This document shows, in pieces, positions 2,160 through 22,306 of a DNA stretch of 32,514 nucleotides. Position 1 is the first letter of the stretch, and each line of letters begins with the position of its first letter. The DNA lies in contig NC_069000.1 of assembly GCF_001194135.2 (NCBI RefSeq), positions 44,404,612 through 44,437,125 of the forward strand, in the 5' to 3' direction. Source of the stretch: Octopus bimaculoides (lineage: Eukaryota). Below the pieces are notes generated by a model. The model made no database searches. It was not told the DNA's origin and saw nothing but the letters and a program-made list of their open reading frames with translations. A program made the position numbers and the translations under genes.

Positions 2160-2506
2160 AAACCATAATGATGATTACAATAATTTCTTGTATGAGGCAC
2201 AAAGTTAGAAAGAAGGTCGAGTGGGGAGGGAAGAATCAATAATGGTAATCCCAGTTTTTGATTGGTTCTACCCTAGAAGAATTTGAAATCAGAATGTGAA
2301 GGAAGGTAAATAAATACCACAAGGTATTTCATCTGGTGTTCAACTGTTTCTGCCATCTAGCACGCTAAAAGTAATAATAATAATGATAATAATGATAATA
2401 AATACTAAGTTATACTAACATGGCTGAATGGGAGAAGATGAAGAAAATATAAGATGAGGAAATGAAAAAAGAAGTTTAGGGAGTTTAGGCACACACAAGG
2501 GTAAGA

Positions 2507-4282
2507 TTAAGATGACAAATTGTGGATTTTAAGGTGTCTGTAGAGGTGGGAAGACTGGGAGAAGGCTCGGTTGCAAATATCGCAGATATAAGGTCGTTTT
2601 TGTTCATGGATTAATAAATGTCTCGAGAGATTTGAGGAACGAGAAAAAGCTTTGTTACAAATTTCACACTGATATGGTTTCTCGCCCGAATGAGTCCTTA
2701 AATGTATCGACAAGTTGGATGACTGGGAGAAAGATTTGTCGCAGACCAAACAACGGAATGGTTTCTCTCCAGAGTGAGTTTTCATGTGACGCGATAAATG
2801 AGAGGAATCTGTAAAAGTTTTGTTGCAAAGTTCACACCTGAACAGTTTCTCACTTGAATGAGTCTTCATGTGAAGCGCCATTGCTGAAGCTTCCAAGAAA
2901 CTTTGGTTACAGAAACCACACAAGTAAGGTTTTCTTTCAGGTATTTCTTCTGAAGAATACAGATTTTGGTTGTTGTTGTTGTTGTTGCTGAAAAACATGT
3001 TGGTATGAGGTGATTTCAATACATTTTCATTACACTTGCCACAAGGATAGTTTGGTGAAGGCGCTTTGATCTTTGGTTCTGCCGGAGGCTGATTATGTAT
3101 CTTTTGATGTCTGGTAAGATGTGAAGATTGTGAGAAAGACTTCTGGCAAATGGTACAGGTAAATGGTTTTTCTTCAGAATGGACTTTGATGTGTCTAGAC
3201 AAGTTGGAAGAGCGTGAAAAGGATTTGTCACAGATGTCGCAGGTGAATGGTTTCTCGCCAGAATGACTACGTAGATGAATCGACAGATTGGAAGACTGGG
3301 AAAATGCTTTCTCACACACGTGACACACGTAAGGTTTCTCCTCGTAGTGCGTTCGCATATGCCGTGCCAGGTGAGAAGACTGCAAGAAGGCGCGGTCACA
3401 TATGTTACAGACAAATGGTCTTTCTGCTGTGTGAATTTTGATATGACGAGAAAGACTTGAAGAACGAGAGAAACCCTTTTTGCAAATGTCACATTTGAAT
3501 GGCTCCTCACCTGTGTGTAACCGAGAGTGAAGAGAAAGATGTTCGGCTCGAAAAAATGCTTTGCCACATGTGGGACAGAAAAATGGTTTCACCTCAAAAT
3601 GGATCCGCAAGTGGCGTGTTAGATGTGATGACTGCAAGAAAGCTTTGTTACAAACTTGGCAGACATGAGATTTCTCCTGTGTATGAATCTTCATGTGGCG
3701 AGACAAATTTGAAGACCGCGAGAATGATTTGGCACACATATCACATTTGAATGGTTCGGTACCAGAATGGATGCGGAGATGAATGGACAAGTTGGATGTT
3801 TGAGAGAATGTCTTGTGACAATATTCACATGAATAAGGCCGATCTTTCGAATGGATACGCAGATGCCGTGTTAGATGAGACGACTGGGAAAAAGCTTTTA
3901 GACAAATCTCACAGACATAAGGACGTTCAGCAGTATGGATTTTATGGTGCCGAGACAGATTGGAAGAACGGGAAAATGCTTTCTTGCAGATCTTACACAC
4001 ATATGGTTTTTCCCCAGAATGGGTCTTCATGTGGTTTGACAAATGTGAAGATTGCACAAAAGCTTTATTGCAAATATCGCAAGCATATGGCCGACTGGCA
4101 TCATACACTTGTATGGAGATCCCTTTCGTGGTACCATTCTTCTTCAGAATATGTTTCGGTAACCAGGCTTTGATTAAATCATCAGTTAAGTTGTGAAAGC
4201 TCTTTTGGTGCAGAATGAACTCATCCTCTTCAGCAAAGATTATCATACAACTGGAACATTCATATGCTCTGATATCAGCCAT
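2507..4282 (-). CDS. C2H2 zinc-finger protein, 591 aa, 18 fingers (1 + 12 tandem + 5 tandem), single coding exon
   Basis: Repeated C-x2-C-x3-F-x5-L-x2-H-x3-H with TGEKP-like linkers (SGEKP, TAERP, TGEEP). No stops or frameshifts. An in-frame TGA 9 nt upstream of the ATG fixes the start. No KRAB, BTB or other effector domain recognised. Confidence 0.97.
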   Translation of the reverse strand: MADIRAYECSSCMIIFAEEDEFILHQKSFHNLTDDLIKAWLPKHILKKNGTTKGISIQVYDASRPYACDICNKAFVQSSHLSNHMKTHSGEKPYVCKICKKAFSRSSNLSRHHKIHTAERPYVCEICLKAFSQSSHLTRHLRIHSKDRPYSCEYCHKTFSQTSNLSIHLRIHSGTEPFKCDMCAKSFSRSSNLSRHMKIHTQEKSHVCQVCNKAFLQSSHLTRHLRIHFEVKPFFCPTCGKAFFRAEHLSLHSRLHTGEEPFKCDICKKGFSRSSSLSRHIKIHTAERPFVCNICDRAFLQSSHLARHMRTHYEEKPYVCHVCEKAFSQSSNLSIHLRSHSGEKPFTCDICDKSFSRSSNLSRHIKVHSEEKPFTCTICQKSFSQSSHLTRHQKIHNQPPAEPKIKAPSPNYPCGKCNENVLKSPHTNMFFSNNNNNNQNLYSSEEIPERKPYLCGFCNQSFLEASAMALHMKTHSSEKLFRCELCNKTFTDSSHLSRHMKTHSGEKPFRCLVCDKSFSQSSNLSIHLRTHSGEKPYQCEICNKAFSRSSNLSRHLLIHEQKRPYICDICNRAFSQSSHLYRHLKIHNLSS

Positions 4283-4382: not shown

Positions 4383-4405
4383 CTGGAAATAGAAAGAGAG
4401 AAAGA
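4383..4405 (-). promoter_or_regulatory. Splice acceptor of the zinc-finger coding exon (5'-UTR intron)
   Basis: Minus strand reads CTCTTTCTCTCTTTCTATTTCCAG|GCAG: a polypyrimidine tract plus CAG, 100 nt upstream of the ATG. Confidence 0.7.
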
Positions 4406-6412: not shown

Positions 6413-7639
6413 TTATTTTGTCAAATGTAATGCTTCTTTATTCATGTTGTTTTGAATTAATCATGCATTCCTTATCTTGTAACTTCAAGAGTTCAATGAT
6501 GTGATTGCTGTACCAATATGAGTTTACATCCCTATAATGTAACAGTTTGGCAAGAAAGTCTGACAGAATGTGTACCAGGCTTCAAAAATCGAAAAGAAGG
6601 CAAGTTCTGGGATTGATTCTACAGAGCAGTGCCCCAGCGTGGCTGCAATCTAATGATAATAACAAGTAAAGGATAAAAGACAGAATTGATCCTCACACTA
6701 TTTCCGTTGGAATACACAGCCTTCGTTTCAATTAATTTTGAAAATAGTGACAAAGTTTGTCATTATTATTAAGCTGCTGTTTAGAACATAAAATGATGTG
6801 GAATTTCAACAGAGGGTTTTAATTGAGATCGTTTTAAAATAGGAAGTTTATTTCATGGAACCAGGAGTGTTCTCAGGCAGATTGGTATGAAATGGGTTAC
6901 ATAAAGTTGTTCACTTGTCAGGAAATATGGATGTTGACAGCAGACACACGTACTGTGAATAATTACTCAAGATTGGCAGTTGGTGACGTTTATGTAGTAA
7001 AACTCACAAAAATGTAAGCGAAACACAGGCACGCGACTGAGTTGAAGGCAGAATTACTTTTGCCTTTGTAACACGTAAAGAAAACGTTGTTGTAGGAATG
7101 TACGCAGCACGTGTACTACAGCAGTACTATACATAGTTTTAATATTGAAATTGAAAGGTAGGGGCAAATTATGTCTACCTAATCTACAAAAAAATGAAAT
7201 ATTTTGCATTTCATGCAGAGTAATCAGAGTAACCTTCGTAATTTTATTGAATTAGGTGCATATTTTGCCATAAAAGGAAAATGTTGCTATCGATCTATTT
7301 TATTCAAGGTAGGCATTGCCTACCTTGCCTACCCAGGTGGCACGTCCCTGGTTGGAAGAATGAAAACTTACGCTTTAAATAAGTGGATGGTAGTTTCTCA
7401 CAGTCTGAGAAAGACGGTTCTGCAATTTCTTGCAGGACAACCTGCACAAATGATTCGTTTATAGTGATCGAATGTTTGTGCATTAAATCAGGTGACTCTT
7501 TCCACCAAATAAACAACACCTGAACAGGAGCACAGTAAATAAATATGGTAATGAAAGGGTCAATGTTATCCTCAAACCAAATAAGCATGGCATAAGTGAC
7601 AAAGTAGTTGGGACTTTCATTAATAAATCACAAATACAA

Positions 7640-8544: not shown

Positions 8545-8560
8545 GTAAATAGATAGATAA

Positions 8561-8621
<61 letters not shown>

Positions 8622-8870
8622 AGTGCGCATGCGAAAGAGAGAAAAGGGACAGAGAAATAGAAAGAGAGGAAGAATGTGTGTAAAGGAGAAAGGGATAGTA
8701 TGCATGAAGGTGGGGAAAAGAGAGGGGAAGAAAGGGATTGTGTATGAGGGAGAGAAAGGGTCAGGGTATAAAAGAAAGATAGAAGAGACGAAGAGAAGGG
8801 GTGTGTGTGTGTGTGAGCGTGTTGTGAAGACAAGGAGCGTAAAATAAGTATGGAAGGAAGTAAAGGGAAA
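8545..8870 (+). repeat. (GATA)n/(AG)n microsatellite (AG at 8571-8613) grading into a purine-rich low-complexity tract
   Basis: Direct reading. Confidence 0.9.

Positions 8871-12805: not shown

Positions 12806-12899
<94 letters not shown>
12805..12899. repeat. Compound microsatellite (TAAA)n(TA)n(AG)n
   Basis: Direct reading. Confidence 0.9.
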
Positions 12900-12903
<4 letters not shown>

Positions 12904-13519
12904 TATTTTACTGATCTCAGTATTCGACTACGGCACCGCCATATAATATAACGGGTGTGCTTAGAAAATGAAATTGATTGTACGTGAAGTGAGTCCCAAG
13001 AATGGCGAAGTGTTGAAGAATTCCGACTAGTTATCAACGAAAGTATCTTGGAGTTTTTGCATCCAAAAGTTAGTTAAGCGATGCAAAGTAAGGAAACGAG
13101 CAGACAAACACAAGCCAAAGCAGGCAAGGAAGATCTCCATCCCATTTTTATTTCTTTCAGACAGAAAGAATACCAAGCCGACCGACTTGGTTAGAAATAT
13201 AAGTGAAGAATTTGTTGAACAGAGGGGAAAGACACACAAACTTTTTTTTTTTTTTTTTTTTGCTTTTTCTTTTAATAAGGTTCGATTTAGATTCATTACA
13301 ATAAATACTAGAAGGTAAAAAGAAAAATATATTTAAAAACACAAATTTTTGGTTACGAATGCAACAAGTTTGGAGTATGTAGAGGTTGTGGGCCTCTCAT
13401 CTGTGAATTATAAAATATAAGGATCGGTCTGTCTTCTTTTTTAAATGAGGAATACGTAGGACCATAAACATACAAAGTCTTCGAAATCAACAGGAACTAA
13501 GTTTTTTTTTAACTTCTCA

Positions 13520-13546
13520 AACTCCATCAATCTCTCTCTGCCTCTT

Positions 13547-13580
<34 letters not shown>

Positions 13581-14430
13581 ATTTTCGCACTTACCCTATG
13601 GCTCCTTCTCTTTCTCTTTCTCCTTCTTCACGCTTGAATAATTAGTTAAATAAATATAGAGATACATTAATTATTAACTTGGAGAGTTTGAAAAGAGAGA
13701 AAATATAAAAATAAATATGTATCCGTTTGCAGATACTTTGAAATAAAAGTGAATTTAACCTCACAAAATCGACATCGAATAATCCAATGAAGAAGCAAAA
13801 GCCACTGAAAACTTCATAACTTTTCTCCGCCCCTTCCTCCTGCAACTCTCTCTCTGTATCAATCTTTACATCTAAAGCACTCACTCACTCTTATCTATCT
13901 GTATGTCAATTGCTCTATTCTCTGTGTCTATCTGTATATCTTGCACTCCCTCTCACTCACTCGTTCTGCATTTATACGCGTATCTATCACACTCACTCTC
14001 TATACCCTCTCTCTATATCTATCACACTCTCCCACTCTCTCAGTCTGTCTCTATATCTATTTCGTTCATACTCTCTTTCTTTCTATAGCATTTTATTTCA
14101 TCTTTGGTATAATTTTCTTCCTTCACTCACGCGCTCCTGATTTATTAAGTTAGTAAACTGTACTAATTAATCTAGTTAATAAAGATAGCAATTTATTTAT
14201 TAATAGTTACTAATCTGCAATCACAAATGAAAAATAAACATTTAAAGCAGATTTAAAGTCAAACAAAAATTAACAAATCTAAAGAACAGTTTACGAAATT
14301 TTATAAGTAAAGATTCACTGTTCCTCTTTCTCTCTCTCTCTCTTTCTATCTATCTATTTGTCTCTCTGTCTCCATATCTATCTCTTTCTCTCTCTCTGTC
14401 TACCTCCCTCTATTTGTCTCTCTCTTTCTC
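13520..14430. repeat. Interrupted pyrimidine-rich (CT/TCTA) low-complexity region on the plus strand
   Basis: Direct reading; several (CT)n runs separated by AT-rich sequence. Confidence 0.75.
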
Positions 14431-14984
14431 TCGGCAAGAGACGAGGGAAAGAAATGCTAAGAAACGAACGAGAGGGGGAGTGTTGGAAAGTTGTTGATGT
14501 AGGCAAGAGAGTGAGAAAGGGGTGAGTTCGAGCACGTTCTTGAAGACAAGAAGGATAAAAGCGGGGTGGGGGAGATCTTCTTTCTTAGTTTCCGGTCTCT
14601 CATGTCTTGTTTTACAACTTCTGTTATACGTTTTGCTACTTGTTTTTTCTCCCTATCTTTTGTTATCACACTTTGAGTCCCTTCCTTCCGTCGTTCCCAC
14701 ATAAAACGGGCCCCTCTGTCAGTTTGCCTTTAACTGCTTCTGTGTGTGTGTGTGTGTGTGTGTATATATCAATAGACATTTATCCACACAAACCCTCATG
14801 ATATAGATAAAGAAACTAGGCTGAAAAAGAGAGTGAATGACGTCGTCTCCTCATGCCGACACTCTGGAGACCAATATCGAAGGATCGCCATATACATAAC
14901 AGGCTTCTTTCAGTTTCCGTCTGTGAAATCCAGTCGCAATTCTGCCCGATTTATTGTTGGCGAAGGAAGATAGACAGATAAATT

Positions 14985-16270
14985 CTAAGAAAAGTGACAA
15001 GTGGCGAAAAGAAGGAAGAGACGGATGTTGAGAGAAAAATTGCAGAGAATAAGAGACAAAGGAATAAAACAAAGGAGTGAGAAAGTTGAAAAATGATAGG
15101 AGGGAAACACGAAGGCAGTTTGAGAGAATAGGGGATGGAAGAAGGGAGTAAGTTTAATGAGAGAAGAGAAAATAAAGTTTGGATATAAAAGAGGAGAAAG
15201 AGAATATGGAAGTCTGTAAAGAATATGAAAGGTGAAAGAGTGTATAGGAATCTGTATAAATATGAGGGAGGAGGAGGAATTGTAAAAAGGGATTGGTGAG
15301 AGATTGTGTGACAGAGGGTGGTGGATCACAAGAGAGAGGGGGAACGTATGGAAAAGAGAGGGTGGGAGAATGAAAAGGGAGAGGTGGGAGGTTATAAGAA
15401 ACAGGGTAAGGACGTAAGAGAGGGTGATAGGATAGGAGATAGAGGAGGGGGTGTAAAATGAAAAAGAGAACGACAAAGAGAGGATGAGAAAGTGAGAGAG
15501 TGAAAGGAAGAGGAGAGATGATGAAAAGAAAGAAAAGGTTGCAGAATGTCAAAGGGAAAGGTTAGAGAATATAGGAGAAAGGACGATAATGTCAAAGAGA
15601 GGGAAAGTAAGGTAAAAGGGAGAGGTGAGAGAATGTAGAAGAGAGGGTAAGAGAATGTAAGGGAGGGTCAGAAAATATAGGAGAGAGAGAGAATGTAAAC
15701 GAATAAGAAGAGGGTGAAGTAGTTGATGAGTGTGAATAAAGATATTATAAGATATGAGAGAGGGTGAGTGAGAAAGGAAGTTGTAGTAGGGGACTGAGTG
15801 TAGGATTCCAAGTAGGAGTGTAGATGAAGGGGATAATGCTTGTATGGGGGGGTCAGAGAGAGAGAGAGAGAGGGAGGATATGTGTGAGAGAGAGAGGGAG
15901 GATATGTGTGAGAGAGAGAGGGAAGAGATATGTGAATGTCATGTGATTTGGCATTTGACTGGCGGAGTGAGAAAGAGAGTAAGAACAAGGGGAAAAGATG
16001 AGGGATAGAGAAAGAGAGCGAGAGAGAGAGAGATGCGTGGTGGAAGTAGATGGGTAAAGGAGTGGAGTAAAGAGAGAGAGAAAAAGCGTATGGATATATA
16101 TAGAAGAGGGTGGTGAAGGAGACAAATGATAAAATAGAGAGAGGGAGAGACGGAGTGAAATGAAGGGTGATAAGGAGAGAGAGAGCGAGAGAGGGGGAGG
16201 GCTAGAATAGCAATGCGAAGCAGAGTGTGTGTGGGCATGGATGGAGAAAGGGAGAAAGAAATGACGAGTA

Positions 16271-16301
<31 letters not shown>

Positions 16302-16310
16302 TAAATGGGG
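14985..16310. repeat. ~1.3 kb polypurine low-complexity tract, including a 24-bp unit repeated three times at 15862-15934
   Basis: Plus strand is overwhelmingly A/G. Unit GAGAGAGAGAGGGAGGATATGTGT occurs twice exactly and once as a variant. The tract runs into a gap. Confidence 0.9.
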
Positions 16311-17279
16311 NNNNNNNNNNNNNNNNNNNNNNNNNNNNNNNNNNNNNNNNNNNNNNNNNNNNNNNNNNNNNNNNNNNNNNNNNNNNNNNNNNNNNNNNNN
16401 NNNNNNNNNNNNNNNNNNNNNNNNNNNNNNNNNNNNNNNNNNNNNNNNNNNNNNNNNNNNNNNNNNNNNNNNNNNNNNNNNNNNNNNNNNNNNNNNNNNN
16501 NNNNNNNNNNNNNNNNNNNNNNNNNNNNNNNNNNNNNNNNNNNNNNNNNNNNNNNNNNNNNNNNNNNNNNNNNNNNNNNNNNNNNNNNNNNNNNNNNNNN
16601 NNNNNNNNNNNNNNNNNNNNNNNNNNNNNNNNNNNNNNNNNNNNNNNNNNNNNNNNNNNNNNNNNNNNNNNNNNNNNNNNNNNNNNNNNNNNNNNNNNNN
16701 NNNNNNNNNNNNNNNNNNNNNNNNNNNNNNNNNNNNNNNNNNNNNNNNNNNNNNNNNNNNNNNNNNNNNNNNNNNNNNNNNNNNNNNNNNNNNNNNNNNN
16801 NNNNNNNNNNNNNNNNNNNNNNNNNNNNNNNNNNNNNNNNNNNNNNNNNNNNNNNNNNNNNNNNNNNNNNNNNNNNNNNNNNNNNNNNNNNNNNNNNNNN
16901 NNNNNNNNNNNNNNNNNNNNNNNNNNNNNNNNNNNNNNNNNNNNNNNNNNNNNNNNNNNNNNNNNNNNNNNNNNNNNNNNNNNNNNNNNNNNNNNNNNNN
17001 NNNNNNNNNNNNNNNNNNNNNNNNNNNNNNNNNNNNNNNNNNNNNNNNNNNNNNNNNNNNNNNNNNNNNNNNNNNNNNNNNNNNNNNNNNNNNNNNNNNN
17101 NNNNNNNNNNNNNNNNNNNNNNNNNNNNNNNNNNNNNNNNNNNNNNNNNNNNNNNNNNNNNNNNNNNNNNNNNNNNNNNNNNNNNNNNNNNNNNNNNNNN
17201 NNNNNNNNNNNNNNNNNNNNNNNNNNNNNNNNNNNNNNNNNNNNNNNNNNNNNNNNNNNNNNNNNNNNNNNNNNNNNNN
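16311..17279. other. Assembly gap (N run)
   Basis: Ns. Confidence 1.
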
Positions 17280-18299: not shown

Positions 18300-19404
18300 C
18301 GCAGTCAAATGACTGAAACAAATCAAAGATTTTGTTCTGAGTTCCTTTCACGCTGAGTTTAAACTTCGTTTTCTACCCTTTTCGAGTTGATTTTACTACC
18401 AGTCACTGAGGTCAGTGATGTCGTTTGGTTCCTTTCTGCCACAATTGCTGGCCTCGTACCGAAATCACAAACAATTATTATAACACAATCCCTGCAACTG
18501 GTTGGTGCAAGATAGAATAGTTAGAACGTCCGGCTCTTTGCGTTCCGAGGAAATCCTGCTAATGTTAGCTTTGACTTTCATTCTTTCAAGGCCGATCAGA
18601 TGAAATAAGCTGTTAGTCTAGCATTGTACTCGATCATCCAATCCTGCCCCTTCAAAATTGCCAGCCTTCTGCTTTAATCAGAAATTATCATTTATAATTG
18701 CAAATTGCCTTTCATCCTTTCGGGATCGATAAATTAAGTACCAGTTCTAATCGACTAGTCCCCTTCTCCAAAATTTCAAGCCTCGTGCCTTTAGTAGAAA
18801 GGATTATTTCATTATCGCAACTTGCTATTTCCCTCTCGTTCATATATTACATTTTGTCACTAAACTCCCGCTCTCTAAACTTCTCCATCTTTCGCATACA
18901 TTCTGTCTTTTCTCTTTCTGAACATTCTCCGTTGATTTTATATTACTTTTTAATCGTTAAAGTCCCTCCTACTTTTGTCTTTAAACATTCCTCCCGCGCT
19001 CATGTTTAACTCATTCTTAAGAATTCGTTCCTACTTCACATGTAACTGCCAGCCTCCCGCAAATTCTCTGTCTCGTTAAACTTTTGTCTTACGCGATTTA
19101 ATTTCTTTTTAATTTCTTCAGTTTCTCCATCTCTCCCTCAAGTTTTTTTTCTTATTTCTCTCTCACTCACATCAAACTTTACATTTGAGGAAAACTACCA
19201 CGCACGCAAACGCGTCCTCACTGTAGGTTTACATGAATGAATCGATTCTAAATTCTAGCTTTGCTCCAAAACAACTTCACAGACTAACATTCAGGTCTTA
19301 ACAACCCGAGAACTGCGTTTTCTACCCAGCTGGGTATCATTATTAGCCTCGGTGCGGTCAGCCAAAGACAGCCTCTCTAGACCACTCCTTCTCTCCTCCC
19401 CCCC

Positions 19405-19407
<3 letters not shown>

Positions 19408-19478
<71 letters not shown>
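19408..19478. repeat. (CT)n(CA)n compound microsatellite
   Basis: Direct reading. Confidence 0.95.
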
Positions 19479-19913
19479 TTTATGCGGCGGCTTTTCCTCT
19501 CGTTTCTATACTCGCTATATTTTCTGTACATCATTTGTCTCCTTGTGAAATCGTTGGAGATTCGGACATAAATAACTTATATTTCTTCCGGTCCTCCACA
19601 TTCTGAGTTCAAATACCGCCGAGGTCAACTGCGCCTTTTACCCCCTCCGACGATAAAATAAAAGTCCCAGTCAAATAGCGGGGTCGATGGGATTGATTAA
19701 CCCCCATCCTCTCAAAACCGCTTGGCCTTGTCCTAATTCAGAAGCCATTTCGCTCATCTCTCTCCCTCGTCTCGTGTTCTGCTCTCTTTTCGCCATTTCT
19801 TGTCTTTCTTCTCGTACAAATACACACACACACACATATATACACACTAACTCACAACACTCTCTTTCTCCCCTTTTATCGAGCTAGCTGTGCATCGCGC
19901 AGCCTTTATATCA

Positions 19914-19972
19914 ATCTATCTGTCTAGCCACCTCTCTCTTTACCTATCTATCTATCTACCTATCTATCTATC

Positions 19973-20031
<59 letters not shown>

Positions 20032-20036
20032 GTCTG

Positions 20037-20076
<40 letters not shown>

Positions 20077-20195
20077 CCTGTCTCTATCTATCTATCTATC
20101 TATCTATCTATATATCTATCTATGTATCTATCTATCTGTCTATCTACCTATCTATCTATCTATCTATCTACCTACCTACCTATCTATCTATCTAC

Positions 20196-20260
<65 letters not shown>
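19914..20260. repeat. (TCTA)n / (GATA)n tetranucleotide array, ~350 bp
   Basis: Direct reading; occasional TCTG and CCTA variants. Confidence 0.95.
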
Positions 20261-20851
20261 CCTCAAGCTAGCTCGCTCTCCCTTTCAATTCTCTGCCTCT
20301 CCTTCACTCTTACTCTCTCACACCTCACACTCTTCCTTATACACATGCCACTCCTCATTTCCCTCTCAATCACCCCTCCCCCTCTCTCTCTCCTTTTCCT
20401 CTTACTCTATTTATCTAACCTTCTCTATTTCTACATTCAACCGTTTCTGGCGCCGACTTCCAGGCAGTGAAGCTGACAGAACCGAACCGCCATACGACCA
20501 TTCTCTCTCTCTGTCTGTCTCTCTCTCAGCACTGCCATTGGTACATTCTACCCGCTTCTTCCAAATATGGGTACTTCTGCTGGGAACTTACTTTGACTTC
20601 TTCTTCTTCTTCTACGTCTTTGTTCTTCACTTCCTCCCTTTATCTTTCTTATTTCAACATCGACGTCTTTTAACGCCAAGTCTTTTAGAAATCAGAGATT
20701 CCCCCTTTGTTATCTATCCAATGCATGCATCTTTGCGCAACCCCCACCCATGTGTGTGTATGTGTGCATGTATGTATAAATATACAAACGTATACTAACC
20801 AGTGATATATGTATATTATACACAAACTGACTCACATTGATTGATAGAGTC

Positions 20852-21249: not shown

Positions 21250-22239
21250 GGGGAGAGAGAAATAGAGAGGCAGGAGGGGAGGAAGAGGATTTAACTGTAG
21301 TAAAGTGACAAGAATGAGAGAGAAAGAAAGAAATGCTGTAAAAGAGAAATAACGAGAAATCGAGAGAGAGAGAGAGAGAAAAGTCATTTGACTGCGGCCA
21401 TATTAGAGCATCGCTCTGAATGTTTAGTCATTCAAATGGACTCCAATACTTGTTTTTTGAAGTCTGCTACTTATTCTCTAGTACTTGTTTCGAGTCTAGA
21501 ACTTAAGCTGATCAAACTCTCCAAAACCTCGACATAATTCGCTGCATCTCGTATCTGTACGTAAGAGTCCATCAGCTCTTTTTGATTTGTTCTCGTGTAA
21601 CACAATCGATATCCCCTAGAAAGCATCTCCTCTGTAAAATGGTCGGAAGAGTTCGACTTTGATGATGCAACTGGTTGAATAAATTGTCTTGAACAGTGGA
21701 GACGTAGGCTGTCATATATGAGACAGATTTTGAAGAATTTGATCCGACCTGTTTCATTCCAAAGTGATTGTGGTGTTATTGATGGGATCAGCTTTTGTAG
21801 ATAATCGTACATAAAAGGGAAGACTACATTTGGTCTTGACTCTCATTTGAACTCGCTAACACGAAACTTTACTTGTGTTGTTGCTGATGAAGTGAGTTAA
21901 ATTACTTAGAATAACGCAATAGTTGATTTAAATGAAATTAAGCGGGAGTTGAATTTCATGAATTCTAGGACAAGTGACGGCACAATGAAATGTAGTCGTC
22001 TCTTTTTTGAGTTATTCGTCAGAAATGAACAAAAATGCTATTAGTAATTTAAGGAGAAATTAAAGAAATATGATTTAAAATAGAAATAAAATTGCAAGGT
22101 TAAAAGAAAGACGTAAATGATATTGTGAACAACATAAACGTAAAGAAACAAGAGATGTGGAAAAAATTGGTGGGTGGGAAAGAAACCGAAAGAAAAGGCG
22201 ACAAGAAGAGTGAACATGGAAATCGAAAAGAATTGGAAA

Positions 22240-22306
<67 letters not shown>

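Follow-up and report, generated by a model that had tools for sequence, protein, structure and literature searches.

Introduction

The expansion of C2H2 zinc-finger genes in cephalopods is among the largest in animals. Here we describe one new and previously uncharacterised gene of this kind, a poly-C2H2 zinc-finger coding sequence (CDS) of Octopus bimaculoides which occupies positions 2507–4282 on the minus strand of a 32,514-nt stretch of contig NC_069000.1 (assembly GCF_001194135.2, forward-strand positions 44,404,612 to 44,437,125; the whole stretch is called the window below). Its unusual feature is a period of three fingers which is confined to the residues that contact DNA bases. The O. 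bimaculoides expansion comprises about 1,450 genes, and the DNA targets of cephalopod C2H2 genes are an acknowledged open question (Holzinger et al. 2025, PMC12513265). Published motif predictions cover the zinc-finger open reading frames (ORFs) of octopus in bulk (Wells et al. 2023, PMC10547256), and no literature specific to this gene was found.

The gene shares with the rest of the expansion its species and superfamily, a CDS in one exon and a zinc-finger neighbour at a distance of 5.7 kb. It differs from it in that no close paralogue was retrieved (the databases lack this protein too) and in that its internal repeats are saturated with changes. As Albertin et al. reportedly described in 2015, genes of the expansion are typically flanked by a tandem repeat of 70–90 bp; analysis of the window and 10 kb of extra flank with Tandem Repeats Finder revealed no such repeat.

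The best matches to the protein were Krüppel-type vertebrate proteins (ZNF271-like, ZNF7, ZNF180 and ZNF112) with 35%–49% identity over the arrays, and the closest solved structures were those of ZFP568, PRDM9, CTCF and the designed protein Aart. Krüppel-type proteins and the octopus protein have in common the CX2CX12HX3H finger, the 28-residue spacing, TGEKP-like linkers and helices of the QSSxLxxH type. Unlike these relatives, the octopus protein is without a KRAB, SCAN or BTB domain, and its strict contact period of three was not approached by any other protein in a set of 196 comparable ones.

Two further natural systems and one engineered system invite comparison. The Drosophila protein CLAMP has seven fingers arranged as a single N-terminal finger and a C-terminal cluster, and to our knowledge it has no three-finger period. 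CLAMP binds GA repeats (PMC4945028, PMC5588930). The octopus protein resembles CLAMP and the GAGA factor in that its predicted target is purine-rich and GA-like and its genome is rich in GA repeats, and it has the CLAMP-like layout of one isolated N-terminal finger followed by a C-terminal cluster. However, the targets of CLAMP and the GAGA factor have been measured whereas that of the octopus protein is predicted and has an odd unit of 9 bp, and no homology to the DNA-binding domain of either was found, as both were absent among the top matches and the Pfam GAGA family had no significant stretch.

Engineered polydactyl proteins (Sangamo, Barbas and ToolGen archives) follow the same logic of one finger to one triplet, with GNN- and ANN-reading fingers strung together. 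The human-derived modules QSHR, RSNR and QSNI are assigned GGA, GAG and A/CAA, respectively. The helix QSSHLTR of the octopus protein is itself an archive module, there assigned GGT; the octopus protein is natural and has 18 fingers. Human ZNF274 recognises a motif in finger- and linker-coding sequence, by which it binds zinc-finger genes at their 3' ends. The corresponding likeness here is the 9-mer GGAGAGAAA, one spelling of a Gly-Glu-Lys linker, with one occurrence in this gene and another in its zinc-finger neighbour. Unlike the ZNF274 case, the linker 9-mers are at least 84 nt apart and not in a 9-bp tandem, and the octopus protein has neither KRAB nor SCAN. We regard the likeness to CLAMP and the GAGA factor, to engineered proteins and to ZNF274 as resemblance only, and in the case of ZNF274 as pure speculation.

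Results and Discussion

A period of three at the base contacts

The CDS was taken from the ORF list and its translation. It comprises 591 codons and a TAA stop with an ATG start, in one exon, and a gene with an identical protein has been called on CM046620.1 (GCA_001194135.2, Octopus bimaculoides). Fingers were parsed by the regular expression CX2CX12HX3-4H, which gave 18 fingers (F1–F18) with the tandem C2H2 signature (CX2-4CX12HX3-5H with a Phe/Leu core). The structural residues (Cys, Cys, Phe, Leu, His, His) were 98% identical across F2–F18, and the ligands were intact in the 17 canonical fingers. Consecutive fingers start 28 residues apart throughout F2–F13 (amino acids (aa) 66–396) and F14–F18 (aa 453–587), which corresponds to the canonical linker length, and the linkers include TGEKP-like forms such as SGEKP, TAERP and TGEEP. 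A preliminary description of this DNA had listed 17 recognition helices in these two arrays, and both lists were exactly reproduced by the parse. It had also assumed a cephalopod source, correctly. The array itself was found within the span then given (2507–4090), but the minus strand, finger F1 and two further 9-mer matches at 2762 and 24396 had been overlooked.

Reading in threes from F2, with A, B and C as labels for the three finger positions within a module, six modules could be described, all on the minus strand. Helices are given as positions -1 to 6, and the site in brackets is that predicted by the code discussed below. Module 1 (3851–4087) consists of F2 QSSHLSN, F3 RSSNLSR and F4 QSSHLTR (5'-GGA GAG AGA), and module 2 (3599–3835) of F5 QTSNLSI, F6 RSSNLSR and F7 QSSHLTR (GGA GAG NAA). 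Module 3 (3347–3583) is diverged, with F8 RAEHLSL, F9 RSSSLSR and F10 QSSHLAR (GGA GNG NGG). Module 4 (3095–3331) contains F11 QSSNLSI, F12 RSSNLSR and F13 QSSHLTR (GGA GAG NAA). Module 5 (2774–2926) is decayed; F14 EASAMAL has lost its contacts while F15 DSSHLSR keeps His3 and Arg6 (GGC NNC). Module 6 (2522–2758) consists of F16 QSSNLSI, F17 RSSNLSR and F18 QSSHLYR (GGA GAG NAA).

When the finger order was permuted and the match of contact residues scored, matches were in excess at lag 3 (P=0.02) and lag 6 (P=0.0001) and depleted at lags 1, 2 and 4. Identity at the contact residues (helix positions -1, 3 and 6) was 66% between fingers in the same register versus 28% out of register, while non-structural scaffold residues were 32% identical both in and out of register. 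Tested position by position, information on the register was present at helix -1 (P=0.004), helix 3 (P=0.003) and helix 6 (P=0.0008), was weaker at helix 5 (P=0.02) and at the second linker residue (P=0.007, Gly after A-type fingers), and was absent at all remaining positions, Ser1, Ser2 and Leu4 included. The permutation and the per-position tests therefore agree with the earlier claim of a helix triplet recurring with a three-finger period. Within a background set of 196 retrieved proteins with at least 10 contiguous fingers, the protein ranked first for contact periodicity at period 3, with an excess identity of 0.39, whereas the background lay at -0.004 ± 0.064 and the runner-up reached 0.18. 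Since a few other background proteins had contact periodicity at period 2 or 4, the phenomenon is rare and not unique.

These results bear on whether the order could be a chance arrangement of near-consensus QSSxLxx helices, which are common in poly-zinc-finger proteins. Ser1, Ser2 and Leu4 belong to the generic consensus, and the contact signatures QHR and QNI do occur elsewhere (37 and 24 times, respectively, among 5724 fingers). However, the ordered triplet Gln/Asn/Ile, Arg/Asn/Arg, Gln/His/Arg was found in none of 387 retrieved proteins, and together with the permutation tests and the rank of 1 in 196 this disfavours chance to the point where we consider it barely credible.

Age of the repeats and selection on the contacts

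The three-finger blocks were 59%–66% identical at the DNA level and 34%–44% identical at third codon positions, modules 4 and 6 being the most alike pair (66% DNA identity). Identical helices were spelled with differing codons (Arg CGT, CGG, CGC or AGA; Ser TCT, TCA, TCC or TCG; Leu TTG, CTG, CTA, CTT or CTC). Repeats within the protein were compared in place of a site-wise ratio of nonsynonymous to synonymous rates (dN/dS) across species. By the Nei–Gojobori method synonymous sites were saturated (proportion of synonymous differences, pS, at least 0.66 in every class), and the proportion of nonsynonymous differences (pN) over all in-register pairs was 0.25 for contacts, 0.44 for scaffold and 0.41 for linker. 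Recent high-identity duplication of 84-codon units, which the preliminary description had raised as another source of the period, is excluded together with gene conversion by this divergence between blocks at the nucleotide and codon level. As the internal repeats are saturated, the gene looks old and not like the product of a recent octopus-specific burst.

Because nearly all of the periodic signal sits on the base contacts while the scaffold and the synonymous sites have been randomised, the pattern argues for selection on the contacts, as had been proposed from the recurring helices, and supports its action over the long term. Judged from these sequence comparisons, the gene very probably encodes a functional, sequence-specific DNA-binding protein with selected contacts.

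A separate observation concerns the codon for Arg+6, which was the same in the second and third fingers in four of five modules (CGG/CGG, CGC/CGC, AGA/AGA and AGA/AGA, the exception being CGT/CGG). An exact permutation test on the Arg+6 codons at 2522–4003, which was post hoc, gave P=0.033. This pairing may be a faint trace of the order in which modules were duplicated.

It could also be argued that the array binds RNA or proteins instead of double-stranded DNA, or that the gene is an unexpressed relic. The exact protein was absent from the clustered collection and from large protein collections, the earlier O. bimaculoides annotation included, and C2H2 fingers that bind RNA or serve in dimerisation are known (PMC12774644). 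The periodic signal, however, falls exactly on the three canonical base-contact positions, and a neutral relic is incompatible with an ORF of 591 codons in which all zinc ligands are intact despite saturated synonymous divergence between repeats. We consider these possibilities very improbable.

Predicted target and proposed mechanism

By the canonical code the 5' base of a triplet is specified by helix position +6, the middle base by +3 and the 3' base by -1, with the protein antiparallel to the strand that is read; Arg, Lys and His specify G, and Asn and Gln specify A (review PMC12264921). Application of this code assigned GGA to QSSHLTR, GAG to RSSNLSR and NAA to QSSNLSI, giving GGAGAGNAA per module, and the GGA-GAG-NAA unit derived in the preliminary description was thus a correct application of it. 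The site predicted for F13 to F2 is GGAGAGNAA GGAGNGNGG GGAGAGNAA GGAGAGAGA, and that for F18 to F14 is GGAGAGNAA GGCNNC. In SALL4, Ile at +6 is in van der Waals contact with the methyl groups of thymine (PMC12264921), and so the N in the predicted unit may be T. That the true motif resembles GGAGAG(N)AA is a tentative prediction of the code, which we place slightly short of an even chance.

Several modules with identical contacts are most simply explained if the 9-bp sub-sites which they read are alike, and the mechanism which we propose starts from this point. An ancient amplification of a three-finger block would have produced a continuous array of six modules behind an odd N-terminal finger. 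Four of these (F2–F13) would have stayed contiguous, the fifth would have decayed (to a possible relic finger, F14 and F15), and the sixth (F16–F18) would have remained intact. Synonymous sites and the non-structural scaffold would have been randomised after the amplification, while selection would hold helix positions -1, 3 and 6 in register as Gln/Asn/Ile, then Arg/Asn/Arg, then Gln/His/Arg. The protein would bind double-stranded DNA, each module reading about 9 bp similar to 5'-GGA GAG (N or T)AA-3', and the full array would prefer purine-rich sequence with a 9-bp period, which it could bind in several registers with high avidity. An intact gene with ancient modules and selected contacts, which binds purine-rich 9-bp-periodic DNA, is the best overall explanation that we can offer, and we judge the case for it to be evenly balanced.

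Within this proposal, a natural target in the form of a tandem repeat appears rather unlikely. Its most specific form, in which the protein is a dedicated reader of a purine-rich tandem repeat of 9-bp period (a satellite or dispersed minisatellite of the GGAGAG(N)AA type) elsewhere in the octopus genome, is unlikely in our estimation; in that form the six modules would give register-independent, multivalent binding. More speculative still is a variant in which the protein would recognise other zinc-finger genes by those of their Gly-Glu-Lys linkers that are spelled GGA GAG AAA.

Candidate targets in the window

Exact matches to GGAGAGNAA were present at 8614, 8749 and 11765, as had been reported before, and also at 24396 (plus strand) and 2762 (minus strand). 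Five matches compared to 1.2 expected from whole-window shuffles is an apparent enrichment, but once local composition was kept the count was at chance (3.3–4.1 expected, P=0.24–0.38), in agreement with the caution expressed at the time that such matches could be fortuitous. The minus-strand match, GGAGAGAAA at 2762–2770, reads GGA GAG AAA and represents the Gly-Glu-Lys codons of the SGEKP linker after F15, where the gene matches its own predicted 9-mer. One of the four GEK linkers in the gene was spelled GGAGAGAAA, as was one of seven in the neighbouring zinc-finger gene (L001 17645–17653, minus strand). The predicted sites of 36 and 15 bp were scanned with a code-based weight matrix against locally shuffled controls. 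The 15-bp site reached at best 15.6 of 21.9 bits, and 28% of shuffles were as good; nothing notable was obtained in the window for the variant GGAGAGTAA. A two-copy 9-bp repeat at 7215–7232 stood alone.

Purine or pyrimidine tracts (at least 90%) made up 7.2% of non-N bases compared to approximately 0.03% in shuffles, and they were mostly (GA)n. Within purine tracts identity at lag 2 (0.56) exceeded that at lag 9 (0.30), which indicates a period of 2 and not 9, and because the predicted unit has an odd length of 9 bp its phase alternates on tracts of the 2-bp repeat. The link proposed earlier between the protein and local purine repeats therefore fails: the tracts are indeed abundant, but these have period 2, no period-9 array was found and the matches are at chance. 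The idea that the protein is autoregulating receives no backing, as neither a cognate site nor evidence of autoregulation was found in the window.

This abundance is relevant to a view in which the protein reads (GA)n or polypurine tracts in the manner of CLAMP or the GAGA factor, binding the very abundant GA microsatellites of the octopus genome through single modules which tolerate mismatches. It would suit this view that all predicted triplets are purine-only save for the unspecified position and that the finger layout resembles that of CLAMP. The 9-bp unit, however, runs out of phase with the 2-bp repeat, as the low identity at lag 9 reflects; a mostly-(GA)n window of 36 nt ending in GGAGAGAAA (8587–8622) scored 11.9 of 56 bits; and no homology of the protein to CLAMP or the GAGA factor was found. 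We regard a (GA)n reader as quite unlikely.

The window contains further repeats. Strand-asymmetric tracts were located at 8559–8742, 12851–12905, 13527–13636, 14313–14433, 15330–16311, 19381–19465, 20276–20655, 22225–22577 and 24192–24509; they switch strand, being purine-rich at 15–17 kb and 22–24.5 kb and pyrimidine-rich at 13.5–14.4 kb and 19.4–20.7 kb. Four assembly gaps (1,895 N in total) are present at 16311–17279, 24937–25242, 27274–27546 and 30431–30777, and those at 16311 and 27274 directly adjoin GA-rich tracts or (TA)n microsatellites. Since the gaps are flanked by repeats, the repeat content of this region is probably under-represented. A (TATC)89 microsatellite at 19909–20260 (plus strand, 88% matches) creates a spurious ORF of 302 residues. 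A mini-array of period 9, TAATGATAA in 3.3 copies, was found at 2372–2401 (plus strand), approximately 105–135 nt past the stop codon of the gene. It is AT-rich and not purine-rich, lies in the probable 3' untranslated region (3'UTR) and is unrelated to the predicted motif.

Points against a periodic target

Several lines of evidence weigh against the proposal of a purine-rich, 9-bp-periodic target. Natural proteins with long arrays often bind with a subset of their fingers, and code-based predictions for such arrays are only moderately reliable. Several linkers deviate from TGEKP (e.g., FEVKP, SKDRP and TQEKS). The best match to the 36-bp site in the weight-matrix scan had 15.9 of 56 bits, a score equalled or exceeded in 81% of locally shuffled windows. 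No purine-rich array of period 9 was detected by Tandem Repeats Finder in the 32.5-kb window and the 10 kb of extra flank. Three protein searches and a search of a representative library brought up neither an orthologue nor a paralogue that shares the helix triplet. Finally, a published module table gives GGT and not GGA for QSSHLTR (PMC3237566), which renders the 3' base of the predicted GGA triplet uncertain. No 9-bp satellite of octopus was found in the literature.

An alternative is that the period is only a historical trace of an old amplification, with the protein now binding one or a few long non-repetitive sites or using only three to five fingers, and with its contacts kept because each finger matters by itself and not because the target is periodic. 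Two of the six modules have drifted (F8–F10 with RAEHLSL, RSSSLSR and QSSHLAR, and the decayed fifth), the leading finger of the module varies, no periodic target turned up locally, and the use of finger subsets is generally known to be common in long natural arrays. What this explanation accommodates poorly is that three modules have retained identical Gln/Asn/Ile, Arg/Asn/Arg and Gln/His/Arg contacts after saturation, which is hard to explain unless their sub-sites are alike. We consider a historical trace rather unlikely as the full explanation, and we retain the proposal of similar 9-bp sub-sites as our preferred reading.

Spacer, N-terminal finger and gene structure

The two arrays are separated by a spacer of 56 residues which contains a possible relic finger, YPCGKCNENVLKSPHTNMFFSNN (2981–3049, minus strand, aa 412–434), read from the sequence. 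A Cys knuckle, YPCGKC (aa 412–417), is kept, both His ligands have been lost in the sequence that follows, and a poly-Asn run comes after the relic-finger sequence (aa 433–438, nt 2969–2986). Its score against the finger profile was weak at 1.2 bits, with 2 of 200 shuffles scoring higher. With one lost finger in the spacer the three-finger register continues from F13 into F14–F18, and if the relic is accepted the array began as six modules of three fingers each, the fifth having since decayed.

The isolated N-terminal finger F1, YECSSCMIIFAEEDEFILHQKSFH (4193–4264, minus strand, aa 7–30), is atypical. It has the form CX2CX12HX4H with the helix EEDEFIL and is followed by a spacer of 35 residues to F2. 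Given the acidic helix, reading of DNA by F1 is unlikely, and a role in protein contact may be inferred. A single-sequence AlphaFold2 model of aa 1–93 had a predicted local distance difference test (pLDDT) score of 60.5 and did not recover the finger fold, and it was discarded as uninformative.

A stop codon is present in frame, two codons 5' of the ATG. On the minus strand at 4403–4383 (4383–4403), 100 nt upstream of the ATG, the sequence reads as a polypyrimidine tract ending in CAG, TTTCTCTCTTTCTATTTCCAG, which resembles and is taken for a splice acceptor; an intron in the 5' untranslated region (5'UTR) probably lies ahead of the coding exon. Given the stop codon and this acceptor-like site, no upstream coding exon joins in frame, the entire CDS lies in one exon and an effector domain could not be added from an upstream exon. 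Pfam identified zinc-finger families only (zf-C2H2, PF00096, E=2e-104 in 16 stretches; PF13465, E=1e-116), and none of the effector domains PF01352 (KRAB), PF02023 (SCAN), PF00651 (BTB) and PF07776 (ZAD) was found in the whole protein. Matches to Pfam GAGA (PF09237), BED, BolA, jaz and other families were summed scores of generic fingers in which no stretch was significant alone, and they were rejected as separate domains. By all sequence criteria tested the gene is classed as encoding an uncharacterised protein of the tandem C2H2 family, and not one of the KRAB, SCAN or BTB type.

Relatives and neighbouring genes

The full protein was searched against an index of 5.8 billion proteins and returned generic vertebrate and arthropod poly-zinc-finger matches of at most 49% identity. 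Queries with its unique parts (the N-terminus, the spacer and F14) gave no matches, and a profile of the five three-finger units returned short proteins only, none of which had the triplet. In an exhaustive HMMER search of 1.84 billion representatives, giant poly-zinc-finger proteins crowded the results and no orthologue appeared. The best identity to any relative was 65% over a three-finger unit and 49% over the whole protein. In the literature no occurrence of RSSNLSR or QSSNLSI was found, QSSHLTR was found only as a nuclease module, and the ToolGen module names were not found.

The sequences retrieved hint at modular helices in further zinc-finger proteins of octopus. An Octopus vulgaris protein of 930 aa (P0091) and a related protein of 952 aa from a public read-archive assembly (P0061) contain a recurrent helix pair, ESGNLxR then QxxH(V/L)xK. 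The pair often comes after a variable finger, in a looser modular pattern which predicts sites of the GGA GAC type.

A second zinc-finger gene (L001 17477–18784, minus strand) lies outside the window, 5.7 kb past the 3' end of the gene described here, and is convergent. It encodes 435 residues with approximately 14 fingers. Many of its helices are of the form HSSTLxx, interleaved with xxxNLxx, and this contact pattern is a different one which roughly alternates. No further zinc-finger-like sequence was found in the 32.5-kb window. The window also contains an intronless, full-length IFT52 ORF of 437 residues at 27717–29030 (plus strand), with the GIFT domain (E=1.5e-117) and the central and C-terminal domains. 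At 25360–25506 (minus strand), beside an assembly gap, a piece of 49 residues is 73% identical to aa 168–215 of the IFT52 ORF. The ORF may be a retrocopy close to an exon that belongs to another copy of IFT52, or IFT52 may have a single exon in octopus.

Significance

Most zinc-finger proteins of cephalopods are too irregular for their targets to be predicted with confidence. The simple, internally replicated contact pattern of this protein, evidently maintained by selection, leads to a sharp, cheap and testable prediction, GGAGAG(N)AA with a 9-bp periodicity; were that prediction to fail, the gene would simply join the many other zinc-finger genes that await characterisation. The repeats of this one protein also allow selection on DNA contacts to be told apart from selection on the scaffold, which makes it a clean natural example. 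Should it prove to be a reader of repeats, a higher-order period would have been kept by selection in the base contacts alone, long after the scaffold and the synonymous sites were randomised, and the gene would provide the first concrete assignment of a protein to its target for the cephalopod zinc-finger expansion.

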